A program made the position numbers and the translations under genes. From positions 2,046,001 to 2,110,000 of the forward strand of contig OZ218951.1 of NCBI GenBank assembly GCA_965112735.1: DNA of 64,000 bases, read 5' to 3'. The DNA comes from Phaeosaccion multiseriatum (Eukaryota > Protista > Ochrophyta, other classes). Below are positions 12,480-63,985 of this stretch, one piece after another. The notes beneath the pieces are model-generated. The model was not told where the DNA came from and did no database searches. It was given only the letters and a program-made list of their open reading frames with translations. The number at the start of each line of letters is the position of its first letter. The stretch's first letter is position 1.

Positions 12480-13721
12480 TCACCCTTGATTGATGAGATG
12501 GCTCATGCGAGCGGCCTTGGCTTCCAGGTAGCGCTCGTTGTGCGGATTGGGCGGCACCAGCATAGGAATGCGCTCCTCCACCTCCACCCCCGTGGCCCGC
12601 ATCCATTCCAGCTTGTACGGGTTGTTGGTCATGAGAGCGACGGACTTGATGCCCATGTCAGCGAGTATGTGACTCACACACCCGTAGCTGCGGGCATCGT
12701 CCGGCAGTCCGAGGGCCCGGTTGGCGTCGACGGTATCCATGCCGCCGTCCTGGAGGTGGTAGGCGGCCACCTTATTGGCGAGGCCAATGCCTCGCCCCTC
12801 CTGCTGGAGATAGATGACCGCGCCCTCGTGTTGCTTAATGTAAGCGAGGGACGCGTCCAGCTGTTCGCGGCAGTCGCACCGGCGGCTCCCCAGCACCTCG
12901 CTCGTTTGACACTGGTCATGAACCCTCAGAGCGACCTTGTGTTTGCCCCGCAAGTCTCCAGACACCATCACCACCGGCTCGTGTGTAGCCCCTGCTGCGC
13001 TCAAATGCCGATACGCACGCAGGCGGAATGAGCCCTTGTCTGTGGGCAAGTCGCACTCACCCACAAAGGTCGTGACCCCCTCCCCGCCTCTGCTGCCTGC
13101 TGTTGCCCGCCCCAGAAGGATGGAGGAAGGGACATGCGGGGTAGCGTCTCCTCTAACGGCGCCGCCCGCGGGGGTGGTGGTGCTACTACCGCTGCCGCTG
13201 CTGCTCTTGCTACCGCTGCCCTTCCGACAGCATGGGCAGCTGGTGGTGCTCAGCATGGCAGACACGCGGTTTCTCTTTCTCTTTCTAGACACACGATTCT
13301 TCGAGGGCGATGGCGGCCCTTCATCACCCCCATCCTCCTCTGCTCCGTCGCTCCACGCTCCCCCCTTCTTGCGCTTGCAAGTGGTGGTGGTGGTTATCGT
13401 CGTGGTAGTTGTTGTTGCCGCCACAGGCTCGCCTTTCTCCTCGTCCGACTGCAAGTCGCCCTTCTTGGCTTCCCCTACCTGCCCCTTGGCCCCCTCTACG
13501 CCCCCCCCCCCCTCCTCTTTCTCCTCCTCCTCTTCCTCCTCACTGCTTTGCCCACCGCTGTCCGAGATAATCCCCAGTCGCGCGTTGTTCGGCAGAGAGA
13601 CGACCCCTCCAAAGAGATGGACCTGCTGCTGCTGCTGCTGCTGCTGCTGCTTGGCCACTGGAGCTGCTACCACCGGCGCCACCTCCTTCGCCCCTGATGG
13701 TCCCTCGACTATCTCCGACAT
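12480..13721 (-). CDS. ribA: GTP cyclohydrolase II (riboflavin biosynthesis) with a low-complexity N-terminal extension
   Basis: Motifs LPTDKGSF, LRVHDQCQTSEVLGSRRCDCREQL (Zn ligands C-x10-C-x-C), YLQQEGRGIGLANKVAAYHLQDGGMDTVDANRALG, LMTNNPYK and NERYLEAKAARMSH. Confidence 0.95.
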   Translation of the reverse strand: MSEIVEGPSGAKEVAPVVAAPVAKQQQQQQQQQVHLFGGVVSLPNNARLGIISDSGGQSSEEEEEEEKEEGGGGVEGAKGQVGEAKKGDLQSDEEKGEPVAATTTTTTITTTTTCKRKKGGAWSDGAEEDGGDEGPPSPSKNRVSRKRKRNRVSAMLSTTSCPCCRKGSGSKSSSGSGSSTTTPAGGAVRGDATPHVPSSILLGRATAGSRGGEGVTTFVGECDLPTDKGSFRLRAYRHLSAAGATHEPVVMVSGDLRGKHKVALRVHDQCQTSEVLGSRRCDCREQLDASLAYIKQHEGAVIYLQQEGRGIGLANKVAAYHLQDGGMDTVDANRALGLPDDARSYGCVSHILADMGIKSVALMTNNPYKLEWMRATGVEVEERIPMLVPPNPHNERYLEAKAARMSHLINQG

Positions 13722-44621: not shown

Positions 44622-47600
44622 TCACGCCTTCTTTGCTCTCTTGGCAAAGCCCCCCTCCGGCCGATGCGGCGGGAGCTGACCCTTCCTCTCGCCCCTGCTA
44701 TCGCCCCTGCTATCGCCCCTGCTATCGCCCCTGCTATCGCCCCTGCTATCGCCCCTTCTCACGCCCGCGTTCTCGCCCCTCATCCCGCTCCGCTCCCCTC
44801 CGTCATAGCCCCCCCCCATTGGTCTCGGTCGCCCATGGCGCCTCCCCTCGCCCTTCTCCTTCTCCTTCTCCTCTTCCTCCTCCCTCCTTCTCCTGCTACT
44901 ACCACCGCTACCACCACTGCTGCCGCTACTCCCACCGCTGCTTCTCATTTGCTGCAGCAGAACCCCCCCAGGCCTCTCTCCAGGCCCGCTCCCCTCCCGC
45001 TTTCGCTTGACACCCTCCGTCCTCGGCCCCGGCCTTGCTTGGCCAGTTAGAGGCCTTGCCTGGCCTGAAAGAGGTCGGCGCCTGTCCTGATTCGTCAGCT
45101 GAGAGGATGGCCGCTGCTGCTGCTGCTGCTGCTGCTGCTGCCGCTGCCGCTGCTCTTGTGGCTGCTGTCGCTGCTGTTGTTGCTGCTCTTGTGGCTGCTG
45201 TCTTTGCTGTTGTTGCTGCTCTTGTGGCTGCTGTCGCTGTCGCTGCTGTTGTTGCTGTTGTGGCCGCGGCGAGACCCCACTGCTGGAGGGCATTCCGAGG
45301 GCGATTCTCTTCCTCTTACGGTCAATGTCCAGCACCTGCAGCTCGAGAACCTTGGGTGTGCGTGTGTGTGTGTGTGTGTGTGCGTGTGTGCGTGCAGGTG
45401 TGTGTGCGTGTGTGTATGCGTTGTGTGTGTGTTTGTGTGTGTGCAGGTGTGTGTGTTGTTGTGTGGGGGTGAGGAGATGCAAACGTTCGTTCGGAATCAT
45501 TCGCACAGCCGGGGGGCGTATGAAGCAAGTAGAGGCGAATGAATGAGTTGGGGAGGGAAAAGTCCACTCACTGTCAATACCTACCACTCACCTGTCCGAG
45601 CGCTATTTGAGTCGCGCCTACCCCCCGGGGGAAGTTGCTCTTATGTAACAGCCCATCTTCGGTGATGCCGATGTCACAGAAGGCACCAAATGGCGTGACG
45701 TTTCGAACCGTTCCAGATACAGAGGCGCCGACCTCCAGGTCATCAAAGGAGAGGATGGACTAGTGGATGGTAGTGGATGGGACAGTGAAGGGGGGGGAAG
45801 AGGGGGGGAGGGGAGGGGATAGGGAGGGGAGAGGGGAGGGTCGAGGAGAGGGAGATGGGAGGGGGGCGAGGGGGGGAGGGGAGGGGAGAGGAAAGGGGAG
45901 AAGGGGGTGGGAGGAGGGGGAGAGGAGAGGAGAGGAGAGAAGGGGGAGGAAGAGAGGAGAGGGGAGAGGGGAGAGGATGGTTGAGTGAGTTGAGTGAGAA
46001 GGGGAGGAGGGAGGGGAGAGGATAGGGGGAGAGAGGAGCGGAGGAGAGAGAAGAGGGGAGAGGGTGGTTAGTTGAGGAGGAGAAGGAGAGAGACGAGAGG
46101 AGAGGAGAAGCCTTCCTCCATCGCTCTACACAGCCCTCTGCAACTTCGTAAAGCTCTCTCTCATATGCCTCTGTGTGAAAGGTCGCCACTCGCGGGCCTG
46201 ACAAGTTGCGTCCTGTGCACACAAACACAGTGTGTACACAAACACACCCATTCCCCCTCCTCCCCTCCCCCTCCCCCCTCCTTCCTCCTTGTGACGCTTG
46301 GTGCTTTGTGCCCTGTCTGCTTACATCACGGAAGGTTGGCGGGGGGAGGTCAGAGCGGGGATCCGGGCAGGGCTCCTGGAAAGAGGCGAGAGGTAGAGGT
46401 TTGAGTTAGAGTTAGAGTTTTAGGAACCAGTTCCGCTCTGGCTGCTGTTTAGATAAGCTTTTCTTTCGAGGTCGATGTCTGAAGGAACGGCATGCTGATC
46501 AACAGACAGGCACACACACACGCACGCACGCACACACACACACCTCCATTCCTCCTCGTTGGGCTCTCTCTGCCGCAAGCTCTTGCATGCAAACACACAA
46601 ACATGCACACACATGCACACACCCCCTCCCCCACCCTCCCACCATACCCCCACCCACCCACATACGCACACACACACACACACACGCACCTTGAGAAAGG
46701 TAATCACGTCACGCACCACGCCCCTCTCCACGCCCTCCTCCAAGGCGATGCTCGCCTCGTCCACTGCAGACAGCCTTTGCAGCACGTCCACAGGGAGGGA
46801 TGGCACTGGAGGGGCAGCAGCGGATACGGGAGTTGCGGCCGTTACGGCGGTCGGTGTGGGGAGTTTGAGGTCCTTGAGCGTCAACCCTGCCGCCTGGAGG
46901 GAGGGGAGGGAGGGAGGGAGGGAGAAAGAGGAAGGGAAGGAAGGAGGCAAGACCGTAGCGACGTGAGGAGAGAGTGAGAGCAAGCAGCGAAGGAGGGCCT
47001 CCCGTCCCCTCCCGCCCCCTCCCCCCCCCCTTCCTCTCCCCCCTGTACCACCTTAACAATCTTGTTGGCCAGGCTGTAGCTCTCGGGGTGCACTCTCGTG
47101 TTGTCCAACGGGTTCTTGGCCCCGGCAACGCGCAGAAATCCTGCAGCCTGGTGATAAGACCCGCGCGCGCGTGTGTGTGTGTGCGTGGGTGGGGTGGGGT
47201 GGGGAGTGTCAGATTGCTTGGGTCAAGGCGAATGAAGGTGCGCACAGCTTTGCAAAAGCAGTGAAAACGTCTCGCTGAGCAGCTCTCTTTCTCGCTGTCT
47301 CGATCTCTCTGCTCTCTGTCTCTGTCTCTGTCTCTTTGGAACAAACTCTTCTGTCTCTCCCTCCCTACCCCCCACCCCCCTTCTCTCCCTCACTCCTTAC
47401 GTGCTCACTGCCTTCCCCGACAGATGCTCCATCTCTGAACCGACAGCCATGAGCACGCATATCTGCTGGTATTAGGCGGCCCAATACACAACTGAAACTT
47501 GAACTTGCTCTGCCTGACCTGCTCGAAAGTCTTGGGCCCGATGCCTGACACGGCTTTGATGTCGCTGCGTGAGGTGAAGCCTCCGCTCGCTACCACAGCC

Positions 47601-50600
47601 TCTCGGATCTGATGGAGAGGATGGACAGGGGGGTGTGAGACATCACGGGGGGGCGAGGGAGAGAGAGGGAGAGGGAGGGGGGGGGGACATAGAGAGAGCG
47701 GCAGGGAGAGACACGGAGAGAGACAGGGAGGGAGAGATACGCAATTGAGAGAGCGGACAGGGCTAAGAACTTATCCAGAACGGACCAAAGCAGCATACTC
47801 ATAACACATAATACTAAGTAGTACACACGTAACATGAAGCCCACACAAACACACACACTCACACACACGCACACACACACCTTCTTGGCTCTCGTCTTGT
47901 TGAGGCCCGAGATGTGCTGCAGCAGGTGAGCGCTGGCGGTGTTGACGTCCACTCCGAGCTGGTTGACCACCCCCTGCACCACGTTCGCCAGCTGTGAGGA
48001 GAGCCTCTTCTGCGCCAAGTCGTGTTGGTACATGCCTGAGAGAGAGGGGGGGGGGGCGTAACAGGGAGAGAAAAGTAAGGAGAGGGGGGGGTAACAAGGA
48101 GAGAGAGGTAGGTAGGTAGGGAGGCAGGGAGTAAGGGACGTGGGGACAAGGGGGGGAGAGAGGGAGAGAAAGAGAGAGAGAGAGTAAGAAAGAGAGAGCA
48201 AGAGAGAGGGCAAGTGTGTACACGGCACCCGTGAAGTCCTACGTAAGCTCATAAAGAAGCAGTACGTCACACTACGTACCTAGTCCCAGCGCCTCCGGCT
48301 CCACCTTGACAAGCTCTGCGCAGGGGTCGATGAGGCGCCTCCCAATGGACACGGCCCCGAGCAGAGCACAGTCCACCCCGGGGAACTCGTCCCTCGCCGC
48401 CGGAGAAGTGGAGTACACGCTGGCGCCGGACTCGCTCACCATGGTGAAGCGGACTTTTGGCCCCGAGCCTGAGCCTGGGCCTGAGGAGGGGGAGGAGGAG
48501 GAGGAGGAGGAGGAGGACTGTAGAATGTCCGCGACGAGTTGCATGGTTTGTCGGCTCGCGGTGCCGTTTCCAATGGCTAGGATGTCGACGTTGTGCTTCG
48601 AAATGAGGCTCTCCAGAGATCGCCGAGCCTGGGCAGCCTGTAAGCCCACGCCACGGGAGAGGAAGAGAGAGAGAGAGAGAGATGGAGAAACAGAGAATGC
48701 GTGTGTGTGCGCGCTTGCACAAGCCTCAGACAAGGTCTCTGATCCCCTCTCTCTGTATCTCCCTCTCCTCTCCTCTCCCCTCCCCGACCCCCCTCCGCCT
48801 CTATCCCTCCCAACCCCACCCCCCACCCCTCCACCCCTCCACCCCTACACACCTACACACCTGTGCATCTGACGAGGCGAATGGATAGACAATGCCCATG
48901 TCGAGCACGTCCCCCCTGCTGCCCAGAGCGGCCCACTTGACGCCGTGCCTAAAGCCAGGGTCCAGTGCCAGTACAATGGCCCCACTCACGGGGGGCTGCA
49001 TCAAGGCCCCCTCGAGGTTGCGGGCAAAGACACGCACGGCTTCCGCATCGGCATTATCGTACACATCCTTCATCACCTTTGGGGGGGGGGGGGGGCAGAC
49101 GAGGAGGCGGAGGAGGGAGGTGGAGAAGGAGGAGGAGGAGGAGGAGGAGGAGGAGGATGAGCAAGAGAAGAGGACGACCCGGAGCAGCCAGCGATGGAGG
49201 GAGGGAGGGGGTGACAGAAGGTGTGCGTGTGGGGGGGGTATCAGATGGGATGAAGACTGGACAGATAGAGAATTAAGAAACAAAAATAGCAACAATGGCC
49301 GCCGCCGCCCTCCTTCACCCCCTCTCCCCCCATCTCTCCACAGCCCCGTACCCACCCGCACCCACTCCCACCCCCCACCCCCCCCTCCTCCCCCTTCTGC
49401 TGCCATCCCACCCACACCTCCTTGGTGACGCTGGGCTTGAGAAGGCGCTTCCACCCATCCAGCACTGCCTCCTGCAGGCAAGCCTCCGCTTCCTTGCATC
49501 TCACCCCCCCCCGCAATCCCTCCCCGCACCCCGTCCGTCTCAGCGCTCGAAAGATGAGCGGCAGGATGATTTGCTTCTCTTTCTCCTTGTCCTTGACGGA
49601 GCTCTTTCCCTTGCTGCTGTTGCCATGGCTGCTGCCACCCTGGCTGCTGCTGCTGCTGCTGCTGGCCTCCCCCGTCGGATCCAGGGTCACCTTTAACACG
49701 CCAAGGGCTTCTCCCCTGCGCACCGCGAGTGCTTGGTGGGGCTGCACCCGCGTGAGAGAGCAGGAGAAGCCAAAGTAGTCACGGAACTTTCCCGCCTCCG
49801 CCGCCTCCACCCCCCCCCCCCGCCGCCGCTGCTGCTCCTCCTCCCTTCTTGCCGGAAGCACTGCTGCTGCTGCTACCCTTGGTCTTACTGTTGGCGCTGC
49901 CATCACCTGTCCTGCTCTTGCTGCTACTGCTACTGCTACTGGTGGGAGCCTCTACGCTCTCCAACACGGCTCGCCTTCGCATGAGTCCTCGGACCTCTTC
50001 TCTGACGGGTGCGCTGTGCGCGACTCTCTCTGCGAGGATGTGCATCGCTCCTGCTCGCTTGTGGGGCTCACAGCCGCCGAGGGCTCGGAAGGAGTCCAGC
50101 CTGTTGAGGGGCAGGGTCGGTGTCGATGGATAGATAGAGATGGAGAGAGGAGATAGGGCAGAGGCCGAGCGGTTGAAGATGGGCAAGGAGAGGACGAGAA
50201 CGGGGGGAAGGAAAGGTTGAGAGGGTAGGAAGGTACACGGGGTCGAGAGGAGGAGGACGAAGATGGACTTCGGGGCAGGGAAAGCTCTGAAACTCTGCTC
50301 CTTCCTACTTTGTGCTGCTGCTGCTGCTTCTGGTCTCACGGTTCTCTCCTCCTCCCCCCCTTCCTCCTCTTGTCTTTCTTGTCTTCCGCCTCCTCCTCCG
50401 CCACGAATGGAGCCCTCTGCACCTTCGCCCGTCTCTACAATGCGCCCGGCACACTGCCTTGCTGACTTACTGACTCACCTGTCCGCTCCTCGGCCTGTCC
50501 AAATGGCGTTGGCCAGAGGCTCGAGCCCCGCTGCGATGGCCTCCGAGGCCTTTGTGGAGCGGCTGCTCTTGTACGGCAGGTACAGGTCTTCCACCTACGG

Positions 50601-51972
50601 AGTGTGTTAGCCAATTGTTGTGCGTCAAGCGATGGGATGGCAGTGGATGGGGGAGGAGGTTATAGAAGCTATGTTAGTGAAGAGTCCGGGGCTTGGAGGT
50701 ATGCAGAAGGAAGGCTTTGGGTTAGGAAGAGCATCTAAGGAGTGCACTTGAATTGCCCCGAAAGCTGCTTTGTGTGTTTTCCTCAGCACTTGTGGGCGTT
50801 CCCCTCCCCCCCGGCCTCTTAATTCCCTCCCGCATGGATTGGATCGCCTGCCTGCCTTGAGAAGTGGACCGCTTGCATGTTGCTGTGCATAAAAGAGAAA
50901 TGGACGGACCTTTGCTAGTGTGGTTGCCTGCTCTATTTGCCTACGAAGGCCCCCTCCCTCCTTGTCAAGGTCCTGGGGGGCCTTTTCTTGAATGGTTGAT
51001 AGCACCACGTCCTTGCGAGCTTGGAGTACCTTCGGAGGGGGGTGTGAGGGGAGTGGGTGACAGGTGGAGGGGTGAGAGGGATGAGAATGCATGCGAAGGA
51101 AAGGGGGGAAGGTAGTAAGTATCAGCCGTGGTGGTGTGTGAAGTTGGAGGTCAGGAAGGGGAGAGTTTGAATACACCTGCTTGAATACACCTGTAGCCCG
51201 ATCGGTAGCAACACACGTAGACCCACCTGCCATTTTTGAAGACTTTCCTGAATGGCAAACACATCGGGCACTTCCAAGCCTCCGATGTTGCTCCTCCTGA
51301 TGGGGTGCGCAGTTGTGGGCGGGGAGAGGAGAGGAGGAGAGAGAGAGGACGCGAAAGCGAGGTGGAGAACATCAAAGGGCTGGGAGGCTGTTTGCTGAGC
51401 AGAGTACACAACCCGCAATACGGCCAATCCTCCCTTTGGGATGGACGGGGTTAGATTAAGAAAGGAGGGGTCTGCCGAGACATGATGCCATATGACACTC
51501 TCCCTCCTCCTCCCTTCCCTCCCACCTTCTCTCGCCTCTCACTCACTCACCGGTAGCGGCAGATGAAGGGAACCGTACACGCGTCATCAAGTAGTTTAGC
51601 AACGGCCGTCACGTCGTTTGCGTCCAGCCTCAGCTCTGCGGCCACCTGAGGGGCGAAGCTGCTGCTCATTTTGCTGCTGCTCCTGCCGCCCCTATTTTCC
51701 CCGCCAGCTGCGGGCGTCAAGCGAACACCGCCGTCCGCTCCTTCTCCTGCCCTCTCCCACCCTATCACTCGGCGCCGCTGCTGCTCTGGCCGTGCAGCAG
51801 CGGCTGCTCCAGTCCTGCGGCTGGAAGTGCTCCTCTCTCCCCTCGCTCTCGATAGAATACAGCGAGCCTGGGGCACGAAGGCAGTGCCGCCCGCGCCAAG
51901 TGCCACAGCGCCAAGGCTTAGGAGCGAAGTTGCGAAGAAGCGGCGCTGCGTACTCCTCCTGAGGCCGACCAT
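44622..51972 (-). CDS. Tex/SRBD1-family protein (Tex_N, YqgF-like, HhH and S1 domains), probably organelle-targeted
   Basis: Motifs in order across more than ten exons: [109 protein letters not shown]...[34 protein letters not shown], and S1 [16 protein letters not shown]. The N-terminus has GGTA-FVP. Confidence 0.93.
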
Positions 51973-52459
51973 CCAAGAAAAAAATGAGAAGTTGGCAGTG
52001 GCGGGAGTGCGTGTGTTGGTTGTCTTGCTCACAGATTTTCCAGGGTTCCGCACACGCGCCGGCCGTAATGACGCCAGCCCGAGGAAATGGCGCCCAGCCC
52101 CAGCCTGGTTACTAATTTACACCCAGACCAGCCAACCTCATTGGGCTGATTACTGATTACGGCCGGCGCACACCGTAATCTTGTCCAGGGTCGACAAACA
52201 GCTAGTCAGACCAAGCCGCATAACCGAGGTGACCAGGCCTAGACTTCTCAAGCATAAATTAGCTTAACCGTGCCCTCTGCCCTACGCTGACAATGCACGG
52301 AGCTCTCCCACGCAGTCCTCACCAAACAGCTTGACCAAAGCTTGCACGCCTTGAAGAAGGGCATCGCTCAGTTGCGGCAGTCGGCTACTCTACCACTAGA
52401 TATATAATACTGGAGTACGCCAAAAGAAGAGCGTTTCCAGCAGAACGCCGCGCTGGAAC

Positions 52460-54008
52460 TCACGTAGATGGCGCAGGTGTGGGCGATGCTTGGCTGTTGT
52501 CGATATTAATGAAGACCGAAGTTGATAGAAGCCCGGTCCGCGGTGTGAAGCGCAGGGCCGAGAAGGGAGGAGAAGTGGAGAGAAGAGAGTAGAGTGAGGA
52601 GAAGAAGACTCCGCTTGAGCATGCAGTTCACTTGGGGGCTTACAGTTTGCGGGCGCGGCGGTCGCGATCATCCCCGAAGTCATCTTCATCGCCATCATCC
52701 CCGAAGTCATCTTCTTCGTCTCCGTCCCTGACACGACGCGACGATGGTGTGCAGATGGCGCGCGATGGAGATGGACAGGAGAGGAACGAAGCGCGAGGGG
52801 AGGGGCGGAGAGGAAGGTGTCAAGAAGCAGGCAAGTGTAAAGCCGGGAGAGGAGGGGACGGAGAGAGAAACCCAGGGAGGGACGCAAAGAGGGCGCGAGG
52901 GGGGAACTTACTCCTGCAGCTTGCGGGCGCGGCGGTTGCCAGAGGGCGCAGGTGTGGGCGATGCTTGGCTGTTGTCGATATAAACGAAGACCGAAGTTGA
53001 TAGAAGCCCGGTCCGCGGTGTGAAGCGCAGGGCCGAGAAGAGAGGAGAAGTGGAGAGAAGAGAGTAGAGTGAAGAGGAGAAGACTTCGCTTGAGCATGCA
53101 ATTCACTTGGGGGCTTACAGTTTGCGGGCGCGGCGGTCGCGATCATCCCCGAAGTCATCTTCATCGCCATCATCCCCGAAGTCATCTTCTTCGTCTCCGT
53201 CCCTGACACGACGCGACGGTGTGCAGATGGCGCGCGATGGAGATGGACAGGAGAGGAACGAAGCGCGAGGGGAGGGGCGGAGAGGAAGGTGTCAAGAAGC
53301 AGGCAAGTGTAAAGCCGGGAGACGAGGGGACGGAGAGAGAAACCCAGGGAGGGACGCGAAGAGGGCGCGAGGGGGGAACTTACTCCTGCAGCTTGCGGGC
53401 GCGGCGGTTGCCAGAGGGCGCAGGTGTGGGCGATGCTTGGCTGTTGTCGATATAAACGAAGACCGAAATTGATAGAAGCCCGGTCCGCGGTGTGAAGCGC
53501 AGGGTTGAGAAGGGAGGAGAAGTGGAGAGAAGAGAGTAGAGTGAGGAGGAGAAGACTTCGCTTGAGCATGAAGTTCACTTGGGGGCTTACAGTTTGCGGG
53601 CGCGGCGGTCGCCATTACCCCAGAAGTCATCTTGATCGTCTCCGTCCCTGTTGTTGGCGCAGTTCGTGAGGTCGATGGAGAAGAAACGTCACAGGAGAGG
53701 ACGAAGCGCGAGCCCGGGGAAGTGGAGGCGGCGGAGGCGGATGTCAAGAGAGGAGGAGGTGGAGAGAAGCGCAGGGAGGCGGGCAAAGTGTCGGGGGGTT
53801 GCGAGGCAGAGGAGGGACAGCGGGCCCAAGAGCAGGTGTGGTCGAATGAGGCGACAAGAGCGGGGCAAAAGATTTTTCCCCCTTTGGATGCACATGGAAC
53901 TTACTCCTGCAGTTCGCGGGCCTCGGAGAAGGTGTTAGGGACTCGGGCGGCGCTGGAGAGCACTGCGACAAGGAGCAGGGTGAAGAGAGCGAAGAGAGAG
54001 AGGTTCAT
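52460..54008 (-). CDS. Secreted 158-aa polyprotein precursor: signal peptide followed by RxL|Q-separated acidic and QASPTPAPS peptides
   Basis: Exons 54008-53905, 53647-53591, 53440-53384, 53202-53119, 52968-52912, 52727-52644 and 52493-52460. Every donor is gtaag, every acceptor cag, every intron phase 2, and the total is 477 nt open to TGA. Protein: MNLSLFALFTLLLVAVLSSAARVPNTFSEARELQEDGDDQDDFWGNGDRRARKLQASPTPAPSGNRRARKLQEDGDEEDDFGDDGDEDDFGDDRDRRARKLQASPTPAPSGNRRARKLQEDGDEEDDFGDDGDEDDFGDDRDRRARKLQASPTPAPST. Confidence 0.88.
52470..53650. repeat. Tandem repeat with a 472-475 bp unit, about 2.5 copies (two exons and two introns per unit)
   Basis: Near-identical blocks; equivalent splice sites are 472-475 bp apart. 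Confidence 0.95.
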
Positions 54009-54880
54009 GGTGGGCTTGCGTGGGTTGGGTCCTCTGTGAGATAGCTCCTGTGTTGTTGTTGTGTTGTGAGACACGGGCAACGCTCCCACTCTCTTGGAGC
54101 CCTTTTGGATGATAGTATTCTCGATTGCAAAGGCCGTCCTGCAAAGACCCAAATTTGATGAGCGGGATGAGCACAGAGGCGGGTGGGGTCTTTGCGGCAT
54201 GTACCAGGCTGTGCAGACTGCGAGTGGGCGACTTGTGCCGTCCGCACATAGCTGCGGGGACTACCGCGCACGCGAGATTGGCGAGGAGCGAGGGCTCGCT
54301 CTACAGCACGCCAAGGTAGTCCACTCATCCCAAGGGCTTACTCCTCTTTCGGCCTGAGTGTGTCTTGGTTTTTACGACGCTGGTCATTAAGCGTTAAGGT
54401 GAGCTGCGGAGGAGGGTCTACGGGAAGAAACTGGGAGGGAATCGGATGCTCTTTGCGTTGTTAGCATCATGCCGAAAGGATGCAAGCAGCTTCTCGCGAG
54501 CTAGAAGCGGGAAGGGGCTTGCCGAAGGGCAGCCAGCAGGAGGACGAGGCCCTCAGTTTGGCACAAGTACGGTAGAAGGCCGGACGCAGTAAGACGGACT
54601 TTGCCCCTTGCTCGAACGTCTGAGCTGAAACTGATAGTTAGGCCTATGCCTCTTTAGACACCTTGCGAGTTAACTACTGCTGTGCGCCGCTTCTCCGGTG
54701 AAGGTTTCAAAGCTTGGAGATGAAGCTGCGAAGAAAGAGCGGCCACACCCCCTCTTCCGCGGCTTCTCCTCCCCTCTTTAGAGCCATCCGTGACAACGGC
54801 TGGCAGCCTCCGCCATGCAGCCTCAACCATCCCGTATACTCTCTCAATCGGTGGCGCGGCCCGACGTGCACCGCCGGCCT

Positions 54881-55948
54881 TCAGTCCTCGCAGTCACAGG
54901 GGTGGCCATTGGCGTGCACCCACTGCTTGATGCCCTCAAAGGCCTCATTTCTCCCTCCATCCCACCTGCCTCTGGCGAGCAACCACTCCGGGCACGAGCT
55001 GCTATCCCATGGACACATGACGCTTTCGGACCGCAGCCACTGCAACATTGGTAGGCTTTTGGCGCGCGCGACGGCAATATAACAAACACCCCTGTCCCAA
55101 TCGCAGAGGTCACGAGCATTTGCATGAAGCCAGCACAGCACCTTCAAACTTCCATTCATAGCGGTAAAGAAAGCCGCATCCCGCCACTCGCTGCCTCCTC
55201 CGATCGCCGCAGATTCCAGCTTGGGCCTGACCCTTCGGTGTCTCAGAAGCAAGTCCAGCACATTGATCTGTCCCTCTTGCGCAGCTTCCGTCCCCCTGCA
55301 TTGCCAAACCCCCCAGTCGAAAGGAGCGTTTACCTCATCCGACAACAGCCACGTGAGCATGTCCACGTCCCCTCTCGTTGCAGCTAGAGTGCAAGTCCGC
55401 TCGTCCCACGGACACGGGCTCTTGTCGGGCAGGTCTTCGGAGCGGAGCCACTTGAGGATGCTTAGGCCGTGCTCAGGATTCAAGGCTGCTGCTTCGCACA
55501 CGTCCTCATCCGATACACACCCCATGCGATACAATGCCTGGCAGATACTCAGGTCCCCCCACTTGGCCACAGCACAGAATATTCTGAGACTCAACCGAAG
55601 ACTTGAGTCCAGCCAGCCATCTCTGACGGCCCAGTTGAGACACTCCACAGACTTGAGTACGCTGTGACGAAGAGATGTCACCTGCGAGAGATGAGCGGCG
55701 AAGTAGAGTCTCCGCCACCCCTTGCCCACTGCAGCCACGAAGAAGAAATGCCCCCCCCCCACCATGGCCATGACCTTCAGCATTATTTCCTCAGTCGCAA
55801 GTACTCTAGCTCGGTGTGAGAGCGTCAGGTCCTCGAGGTACGCACAACTCAGAGCAGCAGGGCCAGCGGCAGCGCTAGGTGAAGCTTCGCGTCCATCATC
55901 AGCAGAGAATAGCCTCTTAACGCCGCGCTCCTCGGCCATGAGCAGCAA
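54881..55948 (-). CDS. Intronless F-box-like plus ankyrin-like repeat protein ('HANGHPCxCED' family)
   Basis: Intact ORF (likely ATG at 55939) homologous to 16956-17876 and ending KQWVHANGHPCDCED. Confidence 0.85.
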   Translation of the reverse strand: MLLMAEERGVKRLFSADDGREASPSAAAGPAALSCAYLEDLTLSHRARVLATEEIMLKVMAMVGGGHFFFVAAVGKGWRRLYFAAHLSQVTSLRHSVLKSVECLNWAVRDGWLDSSLRLSLRIFCAVAKWGDLSICQALYRMGCVSDEDVCEAAALNPEHGLSILKWLRSEDLPDKSPCPWDERTCTLAATRGDVDMLTWLLSDEVNAPFDWGVWQCRGTEAAQEGQINVLDLLLRHRRVRPKLESAAIGGGSEWRDAAFFTAMNGSLKVLCWLHANARDLCDWDRGVCYIAVARAKSLPMLQWLRSESVMCPWDSSSCPEWLLARGRWDGGRNEAFEGIKQWVHANGHPCDCED

Positions 55949-56199
55949 GCGCGTTCGCCTCTAGGGCATAAGACTGAGGGCTCGACGGTCGGTTGACCCC
56001 GAATGGATATCCCTCTTTCCCCCCCTCCCTTCGATGGAAAGACTGTGTGCATAGTCCCCCCTCGGGGAAAAAATCTTGCTCCATCCTAGCGCCATCATCA
56101 GAGCGAGGGTACTACCGAAGGAGTGAGCTGTTACGATAGTACCATGGCCAAGAAGAGGGGTAGCTAGCAGTAGTGTGTACGTGAAGGAATACCTGGGGG

Positions 56200-56370
56200 A
56201 GCTTCTGCACAGGGGTTGATAGCGCCCCCTCTGACGCGGAGGAGCCTTCGCCCTGTGCCAACAAGGTGTTGGCGCTAGAGGACACAATACTGAAGGTCCT
56301 GCGCATAGTGGGGAAAGGGCATCACATCTTCGTCGCTGGGGTGAGCGAGGACTGGAGGAGGCTGTACCCG
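56200..56370 (+). pseudogene. 5' fragment of the 'HANGHPCxCED' ankyrin-like family
   Basis: KVLALEDTILKVLRIVGKGHHIFVAGVSEDWRRLY, after which homology stops. Confidence 0.8.
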
Positions 56371-57239
56371 CTTCCTGCAAACTCAAAGCTACCGACTGGC
56401 GCCCGAGCCTCTTGGCAAGGTCAGCTGCCTTCGGGATATTTGGGGGTGTAAAGAGTCATGTTGCTCTCCACATAGGATAGGACTAGACGCATGGACAAGG
56501 AAGTAGCAACCCCAAAGCCAGCCTGGCAGCCAGCCTTGTCTCTATTAGGTTATCTATGGTCCATCCTAAACGACCAATCTGCCGGGAGGTGAGTGAGAAA
56601 CGGGCCACGCACCGTTTCTCATCGTACTGCCTGCGCCTGCAACCCCTGCGAATGCGAGGACTGAGGGCTGGGGGGCGCCGGTGCATGTCGGGCCGCGTCG
56701 CTGCGTGTTCGATGGCATAGTGTGGGGATGGCTCAGGCTGCCGGGACGCTCACGGATGGAAGTAGGCAGCGTACAAAGGAAGAGGATGTTTGTGAGCGAG
56801 GACGGCGGCCACGGGAAGCGGTGCCTGTCAAGCATGCGGCAGCGGTATCTGATGCTCGTCACGGCTTTGGGGGACGTTGCTCTCAGAGGGATAGGCGCCT
56901 TGAACGGGGAGTGTATGAAGGAGGCAGGGGGAGGGGAGAGAGAGAGAAGAAGAGGAATGAGGAAGAACGGGTGGATCTTCAGCCGCAGAGCATCTCCAAG
57001 CTTTGGAGCTTGAAGGAGCTGCACACCGCGGTTCGCTCATCCGAAGCACTCGCGAGGTGCTGCTTTCCGCCCGCCAGGCTGCAAGGCGAGCTTTGCTACC
57101 ACGACGGAACAGGATTTGGGTCACCAGCTAGGCGTAGGATGGACTTGCTGCGGAGGGGGGTTTGCGTTTGGACCTGTGCAGCCCTTCATATTGGAACTGT
57201 GCATAGCCCTGAATATAGCTCAGTATATCGATAGAGACA

Positions 57240-57630
57240 TGGCTGAATGCATCGTGTTCCACAGGCCCGTGCTCCGGCCACACTCGGCCTACTACGTCTT
57301 CTTGAGCCTGACTGATGGCCTTGCCCTCCTGCTGGCTGCCTCTTGGTGGGCTTCCGGAGGAGGTGAAGGGTTGTGAGGCTAGTCGCTCGCGAGGAGTTGC
57401 TTGTATCGATGCGGCGTGGTGCGGAGAACACTCTCCTGCGTGGGAAGAGCTTCGCGATTGTGATCAGAGAGTCGCTCCAACCCTTGGGCCGGTCTGCCAA
57501 TACCCCGAGCCTTTCCTTGCAGCCCCCTCCTTCGTGGCGCAACGTGCTTGATCTCCGAGAGGCACAGCGCTTGGGCCCGAAGGCGAATAGCACTGGCGAG
57601 GAGTGTGCTGCTTATGGATGAACCCCACTA
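57240..57630 (+). pseudogene. Possible degenerate ABC-transporter ATPase fragment
   Basis: IVFHRPVL (Q-loop-like) and RRRIALARSVLLMDEP (post-signature helix and Walker B-like) occur in different frames. No Walker A or LSGG is visible. Confidence 0.3.
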
Positions 57631-57796
57631 CCCATACTCTTCCAGATATTTTCGAAAAGGCTCCGGGACATCGGGACATCGGGAAATTTTTTTAAACGTG
57701 TCCATCTATGCCACCTTTGCTCGCTCCGCTTCTTACACAACCTCCATAACACCGACTTACAGACGCTCAACTGCTCCCAACACCTAAGCAAGCATC

Positions 57797-58262
57797 ATGA
57801 CTCTCCGCGCCATCCTCACGGTCTTCGCCCTGCTCTTCGTGGCAGTCCTCTCCGGCGCCGCCGAAGTTCCTCGCACCCTCGAGGAGAAGGAGGCCCGTAG
57901 CCTGTAAGTTCAACTGCTCCAATCCCATCGCTCGTACTGTGCGCGCCGTTCCTCGGGCTCTCGCGCGCCGACTCTCTGCCCCGATTCCGTGTAGAGCATC
58001 AACTTTCCTAAATTGACCACCTCCCCTCCTTGTCCTTTGCTTCGCCCTCCTTCTCCCGCTCCCCAATGTCTCGGCTGCTGTCCTCCTTCTACGACATTTA
58101 ATCTCACGTCCCGCTTCTCCGTCGCGCTTCACTCCCACCCGGCAACATTCCCTTCTTTCGCCGCTCCGCCGCTTTACTTCCGAAAACAATCCGTTCGCCG
58201 CTCTGCCGCCATCATTCCACGGCTCCGCTCGCGCCTCCCTTCTCGCTCCTCGCACCTCCCTC

Positions 58263-58297
<35 letters not shown>

Positions 58298-58722
58298 TAC
58301 TCACTCTCTCTCACTCTCTCTCCTCTCTCCTCTCTCTCTCCCTCTCTCTCCCTTCCTCCCTCTCTCTCCCTCTCTCCCTGTCTCTCCCTCCCTCGCCCTC
58401 TCCCTCCCTCTCTCTCCCTCTCCCTCCCTGTCTCCCTCTCTCTCCCTCTCCCTCTCCCTCTCCCTGGCCCTTCCGCCTCTCTCCTTTCCTCTCTCTTACT
58501 CCCTCTCTCTGTCGCGTTCTTCATCAACTTCATCGACCGACGACACCACCACACAGCTATGGAAGGGGCTATTATGGCCATGGCTACAAGGGCTACTACG
58601 GTGGCAGGGGCTATGGCTACAAGGGCTACTACGGTGGCAGGGGCTATGGCTACAAGGGCTACTACGGAGGCAGGGGCTACCCCTACTACCGAGGCCACGG
58701 AAAGTATGGAGGATACAAGTAA
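57797..58722 (+). CDS. Secreted 90-aa precursor of a Gly/Tyr-rich cationic peptide
   Basis: Exons 57797-57903 (gtaagt donor) and 58557-58722 (cag acceptor after a long pyrimidine tract), phase 2. Protein: MTLRAILTVFALLFVAVLSGAAEVPRTLEEKEARSL-YGRGYYGHGYKGYYGGRGYGYKGYYGGRGYGYKGYYGGRGYPYYRGHGKYGGYK. The 33-nt repeat encodes GYKGYYGGRGY. Confidence 0.85.
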
Positions 58723-59654
58723 AGTACCACAGGATGACCCAGGATAAGCCGGGTTAGCTACGGAAAGTAGCAAGGAAATATTGCTCTCGGAGCCGAGATG
58801 AGACTAGACATAGACAAGACATGTAAATACAAAATCTAAAGCGCTGCGTACAGGTTCTTTTCCATTATCTAAGCTGAGCTTCGAGGAATATTCTGTTCAG
58901 AGCGGAGAAAGTACAGACGAGAGGCGGCCAAAATTGTGGCGAGTAGAGTATTGCTTATCTCGCTCTCAGACATTCGTTGTGCCTGCTCTGCCCATCTCGG
59001 TGAAGCCCCGCAGGCACGTGGCCGATGCGCACATAGGCGACACTGCTGCACGCACCACCCCGCTCTGCAAGCTTGCAAAGACCAAGTGAGGCCACCTCAT
59101 TTCTCTCTGCCTTCGACCTCAGCGCATTGCTCGGCATGCCTCTCTCTGCTGGAACAGGCGCATTCTCTCATATCCTGCAGGCCGGGATGCCGCTCAGCAC
59201 GCCCCTCCGCACCGCTGCTGCTCGCTCCATAGCGGCGCTTCTTTCGAGCACAGAGATGCGTGAGCGCGCGCCGAATTCCGCGGCGTGCGCTCTCTCTGTC
59301 GCGGCAGCAAATCGAGACCTTTCGCCACACCTCCGTCAAGCCCAAGCAGGGGTATTTCGGCTCCGAGGCGTGGCTTGGGCCAGCCAACATTTCCCTCCGC
59401 TCACCCTTCCACAGCTCGTCGCTCCTCTGGAGATATGGGAGCGCAGCATCGACCAGCCCCATGCCACGCAGCCTGTGAACGCCGCAGCACTGGGTCGTCC
59501 CATTGCGGTTTCATCACCTCTCGATCGCAGCAGCAGGCCGCACACAGGCTCGGGTGCTTACGTGCCTCGTCGGTACTTGTCCCCCCCCCCCACTCAGACA
59601 CATCCTCAGGACGGGTGGTGCAGCGGATCGCTTCTCCCGCTGCAAAAATGGCTG

Positions 59655-59955
59655 CCAGTCCACCTCTTCCTCCGTATTGAAGTAGTGCACCGAGGCCCTA
59701 GCGAAACTGACGTCAGCGAGGCCCCTCCCTGCCGCGTCAAGAACGGTGCTTGTGGGAGCAGACACGGACACGAAGCAAGCCTTGCGGCGAGCGTTTCCGC
59801 GGGGACGCCGCTCATCGTAAAGCTCACCAGCCCTGACATGCGCGGGCCGAGGTCTCTGCAAACGCGAGGCCTCCACCACCCAGTCAGTCTCTCCCGAGGC
59901 TCCACCGCTTCCGCTGCCCGCCTCGCCCCTCCCAACTCATCCAGTGCACAGCCGC
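59655..59955 (-). pseudogene. C-terminal fragment of a class-V PLP aminotransferase / cysteine desulfurase-like enzyme, frameshifted
   Basis: RDLGPRMSGLVSFTMSGVPAETLAARLA / VSVSAPTSTVLDAAGRGLADVSFARASVHYFNTEEEVD matches the SufS/CsdA-type C-terminus (G.VSF...; RAS.hyyNT.EEvD). Confidence 0.7.
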
Positions 59956-59959
59956 GGCG

Positions 59960-60290
59960 ATGCTGGGCCTGGCAGATGCTCACCTCTCCAGTCACGGCTA
60001 GCCCAGGTTGACGGCCCAGTCGAGGCACTCCACAGGCCCGAGCACATTGCGAGTAAGAAACGTGTCCAAGGCGGGATGAGCGGCGTGGCGCTGTACAGCC
60101 TCGTCCAGTCCTTGCTCATCCCAGTGACGAAGCCGTGAAGCTCCTTCCCCACAATGCCGATGACATGCCTCATCGTGTCGTCCAGAGCCAACACGTGGCC
60201 ACAGGGAGAAGGCTCCCCTACGCCAGAGGGGATGCTATCCCCCCCCTGTGCAGAAGAGGCCACTCCTCCGTGTCATTCATGTCCTCCTCC
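59960..60290 (-). pseudogene. 5' fragment of the 'HANGHPCxCED' ankyrin-like family
   Basis: EPSPCGHVLALDDTMRHVIGIVGKELHGFVTGMSKDWTRLYS, then a frameshifted VLGPVECLDWAV. Confidence 0.8.
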
Positions 60291-63663: not shown

Positions 63664-63985
63664 TAACTACTTTGTCCGTTGGGGAGGACTGACGAGTCGG
63701 GGAAATACGACGGGGCGGTGAGACGTTACTTTTAGACAACCATAGATGGCACTTTAAGGGGACCGCGAAAATAGAACTGGTTCTACTTTGTCCGATGGGG
63801 AGGACTGACGAGTCGGGGGGAATACGACGGGGCGGTGAGAGTTACTTTTAGACAACCATAGATGGCACTTTAAGGGGGCCGCGAATGTGCTGATGGGGAG
63901 GACTGACGAGTCGGGGGGAATAGAGGGAAGATGGGGCGGTGAGAGTTACTTTTCGACAACCATAGATGGCACTTTAAGACCGCGC
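63664..63985. repeat. Tandem repeat with a 110-117 bp unit, 3 copies
   Basis: The core ggggaggactgacgagtcgggg...ggggcggtgaga(c)gttactttt.gacaaccatagatggcactttaag occurs three times. Confidence 0.92.

Follow-up and report, generated by a model that had tools for sequence, protein, structure and literature searches.

Gene Model of the Gly/Tyr Gene

The window (i.e., the whole stretch of 64,000 nucleotides that was analyzed) is eukaryotic, microsatellite-rich and presents a GC-content of about 59%. It contains a predicted two-exon gene whose second exon encodes a peptide rich in Gly and Tyr (hereafter the Gly/Tyr gene). A paralogous gene lies 3.8 kb away, such that polybasic and polyacidic cargo are found behind a common leader design (Table 1).

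Table 1. Coordinates of the Gly/Tyr gene and of reference features, given as positions in the window.
Feature	Position	Strand	Description
Exon 1	57797-57903	+	35 codons plus CT; ATG at 57797; signal peptide and pro-segment ending in RSL
Signal peptide	57797-57862	+	22 aa; basic n-region, hydrophobic core, predicted cut after G-A-A
Pro-segment	57863-57903	+	14 aa; RTL at 57872-57880; terminal RSL at 57896-57903, last base at 58557
Intron (predicted)	57904-58556	+	653 nt, phase 2, GTAAGT...CAG; splits the Leu codon of RSL
CT microsatellite tract	about 58240-58510		Inside the 653-nt intron
Exon 2	58557-58722	+	Last base of the Leu codon, 54-aa peptide (58558-58719), TAA at 58720-58722
Tandem repeats	58582-58680	+	Three 33-nt units, each encoding GYKGYYGGRGY
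Acidic paralogue	52460-54008	-	Seven exons: leader exon and six short phase-2 exons; divergent from the Gly/Tyr gene
Tex-like gene	47000-52050	-	Multi-exon; reference for intron structure
GTP cyclohydrolase II ORF	12480-13721	-	Stand-alone; long low-complexity N-terminus

The frame of exon 2 (58558-58722) is fixed by a phase-2 donor and a single acceptor candidate. Indeed, pattern searches returned the GTAAGT that follows position 57903 as the sole GT[AG]AG donor from the ATG to position 58560, and the sole [CT]AG of the interval 58400-58600 ends at 58556. The last 150 nt of the intron present a pyrimidine fraction of 0.84 and resemble, as read by eye, most acceptors of the Tex-like gene. The sequence CATCGAC, located before the exon-2 acceptor, recurs in intron 1 of the neighboring paralogue and in one intron of the Tex-like gene. 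The donor contains an in-frame TAA (57904-57907) right behind the Leu codon of RSL, so an unspliced transcript would encode the leader alone, ending at RSL, and the same would apply to the introns found at the RKL sites of the neighbor.

The predicted precursor of 90 aa (22-aa signal peptide, 14-aa pro-segment and 54-aa cargo) is well supported, and we infer that the 57903/58557 junction is spliced and that the gene is expressed. Support for the frame comes from the single donor and acceptor candidates, from differences between repeats that are only synonymous (see below) and from the paralogous leader exon carried by the neighbor. The initial annotation had described a two-exon gene with a 54-aa Gly/Tyr product of exon 2, an intron located inside the Leu codon of the gene's own RSL and an ORF track that reads exon 2 in the wrong frames only. 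Our model agrees with this description: the splice candidates are single and the frame is intact, the predicted junction splits the Leu codon, and the listed ORFs that cover exon 2, 58013-58747 (+) and 58279-58773 (-), are both in other frames. As judged from its sequence, the locus is a credible orphan gene without annotation.

The hydropathy of the signal peptide reaches 3.3 over 9 residues and its hydrophobic core is common to the leaders of the Gly/Tyr gene and of the neighbor, which together lend good support to a signal peptide ahead of the cargo, as previously proposed. The cut site was predicted from the (-3,-1) small-residue rule. The pro-segment, which had been described as acidic, is in fact nearly neutral, with four Glu against two Arg and one Lys (net charge of about -1). 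It holds two RxL motifs, RTL and RSL, and cleavage would be expected after RSL by analogy with diatom precursors. The RTLEE of this pro-segment, as well as RKLQE and RELQE in the paralogue, fit the pattern RxLxE, which resembles the apicomplexan export motif.

Repeats and Composition of the Predicted Peptide

Translation of exon 2 returned the composition reported initially: 22 Gly, 19 Tyr, 5 Lys, 5 Arg, 2 His, 1 Pro and zero acidic residues (Gly 41%, Tyr 35%, Lys and Arg 19%). The peptide of 54 aa has a mass of 6.2 kDa, a computed pI of 9.8 and a computed charge of +10 at pH 7 and +9 at pH 8.1, and it contains no Ser, Thr, Cys or KxxK. Tyr residues are often found near basic residues: 15 of the 19 have a Lys or Arg no more than two positions away, and six directly adjoin Lys, Arg or His. 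AlphaFold, run on the peptide with single-sequence input, produced no confident fold (pLDDT 50, pTM 0.12).

The GYKGYYGGRGY repeats that had been noted correspond to the three 33-nt units of Table 1. These units differ at two sites, both of which are third positions and synonymous in the Gly/Tyr frame (P about 0.05 for the synonymous test, based on these two sites only), and third codon positions of this frame are C/G-rich. Shadow frames, Thr/Ala-rich on the forward strand and hydrophobic on the reverse strand, were rejected: both repeat differences alter residues in the other forward frames. Elsewhere in the window, there is no stop-free stretch of 54 codons with more than six each of Gly and Tyr.

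We compared read-derived contigs with the assembly over 58511-59560, an interval adjacent to the CT tract of the intron. The four runs come from one sample and are genomic-DNA-like, and the contigs of all four extend flat through intergenic DNA with no joint, as genomic DNA behaves. These public contigs were identical to the assembly over 58580-59560, the first 23 bases of exon 2 lying outside coverage, and a count of three repeats is consistent with the unitig boundaries and with the 2:1:1 depth of run X3. Since the assembly may itself have been built from these four runs, the comparison guards against assembly error only. We found no RNA run containing exon 2 in public read data.

Homology Searches

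Leader and cargo exons were queried separately rather than as the joined 90-aa precursor. The sensitivity of these searches was low: queries were either short or of low complexity, and longer kin fall beyond the length window. The exon-2 peptide matched no family of Pfam and NCBIfam, no PDB entry, nothing in the ESM Atlas and nothing among metagenome and viral contigs. The leader exons gave no match in the ESM Atlas or in metagenome contigs, and two repeat proteins recovered by a leader-exon profile search were discarded as spurious. Against a set of 5.8 billion proteins, the exon-2 peptide had no match at E <= 1e-3 and a single one at E <= 10; no mussel protein was among the matches of this low-complexity query.

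This single match (P0123, E = 2.5e-3) is a protein of 79 aa encoded on a metagenome contig (L001:244-483) with no Pfam or NCBIfam family. It contains three GYGYDGYYGGR repeats, matching the algal unit at 10 of 11 residues. The two genes differ in that the lipoprotein-like protein presents Asp in place of Lys, a bacterial lipobox-type signal, other synonymous codons, and neither RxL nor intron. The likeness between the repeats probably represents convergence. Horizontal transfer from a gene of this kind was judged unlikely, because the synonymous codons and the N-terminus differ. The occurrence of a near-identical repeat in a probably unrelated, bacterial lipoprotein-like protein indicates that composition is a weak guide.

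The Acidic Paralogue and the Genomic Context

An exon-by-exon check of the model of the paralogue revealed Asp/Glu-rich units alternating with Pro/Ser/Thr units, with RRARKL closing each; one unit of 27 aa contains 15 acidic residues. The leader exons of the two genes present 47% identity at the protein level and 80% identity at the DNA level over 59 nt. Scanning the window for an ATG, a hydrophobic core and an RxL near a phase-2 donor returned only the Gly/Tyr gene and this neighbor, and the same pattern had zero matches in 30 shuffles, a post hoc test in that the pattern was built from these two genes.

All introns of the paralogue are in phase 2. Introns 2, 4 and 6 interrupt RKL within its Leu codon, and introns 1, 3 and 5 are located two codons later. 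The initial annotation had placed the intron of the Gly/Tyr gene inside the Leu codon as in the neighbor; this holds for introns 2, 4 and 6 but not for intron 1, the homologous one, which is two codons past RxL. Since the introns at the site of processing all have the same phase, an exchange of cargo exons would be possible. Within the paralogue, a 472-bp unit present in 2.5 copies duplicates an acidic exon and a Pro/Ser/Thr exon.

It is possible that the acidic peptides serve as polyanion partner of the Gly/Tyr peptide. An ankyrin-like single-exon ORF is located between the two genes (54881-55948), and no convincing shared promoter motif was found, the upstream regions sharing only matches of 7-10 nt; both points count against the function proposed below. 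The sequence ACACAAC is found at 57735 (+) and 54064 (-), respectively 62 and 56 nt ahead of the start codons; it opens a C/A-rich leader, possibly at the transcription start, and occurs seven further times in the window. Rfam returned zero matches over 52000-60200. The GTP cyclohydrolase II is 69-72% identical to proteins of the range of brown algae, Chrysoparadoxa and Tribonema. In the tree, it and the brown-algal copies are sisters; the support of 93/87 is moderate and falls short of what was required for a firm node. On the basis of this one marker gene, the host is probably an ochrophyte close to the brown algae.

Proposed Function of the Gly/Tyr Peptide

We lean, with modest confidence, towards the Gly/Tyr peptide being a structural polycation of a wall, coat or attachment material that is released at the RxL site, condenses with polyanions and is perhaps hardened through its Tyr residues. 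This reading is favored by the frame, the paralogous leader of a neighbor whose introns are all in phase 2, the pI of 9.8 and charge of +10, the proximity of Tyr to Lys and Arg, the lack of a confident fold, the layout of an RXL precursor and the precedent of a Tyr/Lys-rich diatom protein that turned out to belong to the cell wall (PMC4220933). Against it, we found neither an RNA run containing exon 2 nor a homologue with known function, composition is a weak guide, and the peptide, being devoid of Cys, Ser and Thr, offers none of these residues for cross-links or modifications of other kinds. The initial annotation had proposed an adhesive or wall peptide crosslinked through DOPA or dityrosine and compositionally like mussel adhesives: we retain the adhesive or wall class as the most likely one, while the mussel and DOPA part draws on composition and not on homology.

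In the proposed mechanism, the signal peptide would bring the prepropeptide into the endoplasmic reticulum, and an RxL-specific protease of the secretory path would cut after RSL, freeing exactly the product of exon 2. Precursors of diatom wall proteins typically contain a signal peptide and a short domain ending in RXL, and the endopeptidase that removes the RXL is so far known through its products (PMC4557024, PMC5525289). The released cargo would be a disordered polycation of 6.2 kDa with Tyr as stickers, Gly as spacers and Lys and Arg as charges; Tyr stickers and Gly spacers belong to the grammar of condensing extracellular protein materials (PMC12138867). Outside the cell, the peptide would most likely condense with polyanions (wall polysaccharides or the Asp/Glu peptides of the sibling gene) through charge and cation-pi or pi-pi contacts, and oxidative Tyr cross-links (dityrosine or DOPA-quinone) may harden it into part of the matrix of a wall, coat, cyst or attachment structure. 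Vanadium haloperoxidases are implicated in adhesion in brown algae and their sister Schizocladia (10.1101/2024.02.19.579948), with no tie to the Gly/Tyr gene. In this reading, the gene is lineage-specific, and exon 2 is one cargo cassette among others of a gene family whose common leader exon is connected to varying cargo exons through phase-2 introns at the RxL site. The sequence, frame and composition of the peptide, the paralogous leader and the lack of a predicted fold are observations, and its cleavage, partner, cross-linking and location are predictions.

Comparison With Known Systems and Alternative Readings

The layout of the precursor resembles that of the diatom proteins silaffin Sil1p, silacidin, cingulins and silicanin, which present a signal peptide, a short pro-domain ending in RXL and a low-complexity cationic or aromatic cargo, and RXL is also found between the units of polyprotein siblings (PMC4557024, PMC5525289). 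In contrast to these precursors, the algal gene presents no homology, KXXK or phosphorylatable Ser, its cargo is only 54 aa long, its intron is located at the RxL and its host is apparently not a diatom. Cingulins carry KXXK repeats (PMC4557024). The parallel drawn initially with cingulins thus holds for the signal/RXL layout and fails for the peptide itself, which is devoid of KxxK, Ser and Thr; we conclude that it is not a member of the silaffins or cingulins. A role as silica template, with the acidic sibling as the equivalent of silacidin, appears highly improbable. The signal and RXL layout and the cation/anion pair do resemble silaffin/silacidin systems (PMC4557024), but the peptide lacks KXXK, Ser and Thr, the motifs that define silaffin-like proteins (PMC5501833). 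In addition, the GTP cyclohydrolase II of the window groups, weakly, with brown algae. Brown algae are not known to build silica walls, which we counted against this role.

Among animal adhesives, we considered the mussel foot proteins Mfp-3 (5-7 kDa, 20 mol% DOPA) and Mfp-5 (30 mol% DOPA, 17% Lys, 15% Gly) (PMC9783952). The algal peptide resembles them in being small, basic, secreted and rich in Tyr, Gly and Lys, the mussel proteins ranging from 5 to 9 kDa (PMC9783952); it differs by the absence of homology and of Ser, by its higher shares of Gly (41%) and Tyr (35%) and by its exact 11-residue repeats. The sandcastle worm proteins Pc1 and Pc2, which form a coacervate with the polyanion Pc3, contain Tyr and present a pI of 9.7-9.9, against 9.8 for the algal peptide (PMC11277488, PMC9783952), but they are larger (18-21 kDa), their polyanion is based on phosphoserine, whereas that of the alga would be based on Asp/Glu, and there is no homology. 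The peptide is not classed with Mfp-3, Mfp-5 or Pc-1/2, the likeness being compositional only. In the diatom Amphora coffeaeformis, a screen for mussel-like Tyr/Lys composition led to AC3362, a cell-wall matrix protein with no role in adhesion; Dopa was reported absent, and the authors raised Dopa-free coacervation as an alternative (PMC4220933). AC3362, AC714 and AC1077 are, like the algal peptide, stramenopile proteins rich in Tyr, Lys and Gly that were found via mussel-like composition (PMC4220933), whereas AC3362 and AC714 are much longer, exceeding 500 aa, and contain KG repeats. This precedent cuts against a glue, since the same reasoning from composition led there to a wall-matrix protein.

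A glue of the mussel or sandcastle worm type would be a sub-case of the structural reading: tyrosinase would convert Tyr to DOPA and the peptide would coacervate with the acidic sibling peptides, priming the attachment of spores or cells. The size, pI and Tyr share of the peptide are within the range of Mfp-3, Mfp-5 and Pc-1/2 (PMC9783952). In the glue of the sandcastle worm, polybasic proteins are combined with polyacidic ones (PMC11277488), and a polyacidic paralogue is located 3.8 kb from the Gly/Tyr gene. We nevertheless consider this glue unlikely, given the lack of homology to known adhesives, the Amphora candidate that proved not to be an adhesive and the absence of Dopa reported there (PMC4220933), the small number of Tyr that directly adjoin Lys, Arg or His (6/19), and the contrast between a repetitive peptide without Ser and Mfp-3, which has no repeats, or Mfp-5, which has phosphoserine (PMC9783952). 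The fuller version seems quite improbable: an independently evolved two-component glue like those of mussels or tubeworms, in which a DOPA-modified Gly/Tyr polycation and Asp/Glu polyanions would be encoded by interchangeable exon cassettes that share a leader exon, cut free at RxL and hardened by tyrosinase. In the literature that we searched, we found no description of a DOPA-protein adhesive from any stramenopile.

Alternatively, the peptide could be a linear cationic Gly-rich antimicrobial that is kept behind its pro-segment, freed by cleavage and directed at bacterial membranes at the cell surface. Linear Gly-rich antimicrobial peptides such as armadillidin, shepherins and ctenidins are likewise cationic, repetitive and unstructured (PMC5031766), and the algal peptide also agrees with this class in being Gly-rich and Cys-free. 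Among them, the membranolytic and repetitive armadillidin (53 aa, 47% Gly) is near the algal peptide in length and Gly share (PMC5031766). This reading is quite unlikely in our view: the algal peptide is dominated by Tyr, whose share of 35% is very high for the class and would favor self-association, and the leader is shared with polyacidic and Pro/Ser/Thr cargo, for which an antimicrobial role is improbable, such that the family looks structural. Finally, we consider it very unlikely that we are dealing with a silent gene, or with one that follows another splicing pattern, whose Gly/Tyr frame is never translated. The lack of an RNA run containing exon 2 and the two sites behind the synonymous test are consistent with such a gene, but the intact frame, the single splice candidates, the synonymous-only differences, the C/G-rich third positions and the conserved paralogous leader argue against it, and the competing frames present no comparable support.

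Significance

The design of RxL-processed secreted precursors is already known, and the Gly/Tyr peptide is unusual within it. If the gene is expressed and its product cut as predicted, the signal-RxL-cargo design, mostly studied in diatom silica proteins, would extend to an apparently non-diatom ochrophyte, in which the position of the introns at RxL would make cargo exons interchangeable. Little is known about the proteins of algal attachment and wall materials. A natural peptide of 54 aa is easy to synthesize, which makes phase separation, tyrosinase curing, wet adhesion and antimicrobial action directly testable, and it would constitute a compact substrate for tracking down the unidentified RxL protease.

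Other Features of the Window

Several ankyrin-repeat ORFs are single-exon in this intron-rich genome (54881-55948, 16956-17876, 21910-22602 (-) and 61713-62978 (+)), and these are possibly mobile or recently expanded. The region 59500-60250 (-) contains broken-looking frames: one short piece resembles the ankyrin-like ORF 54881-55948, and another resembles, by eye, the end of a class-V aminotransferase, with no Pfam match. At the end of the window (63670-63980), we counted by eye three copies of a unit of roughly 100 nt.
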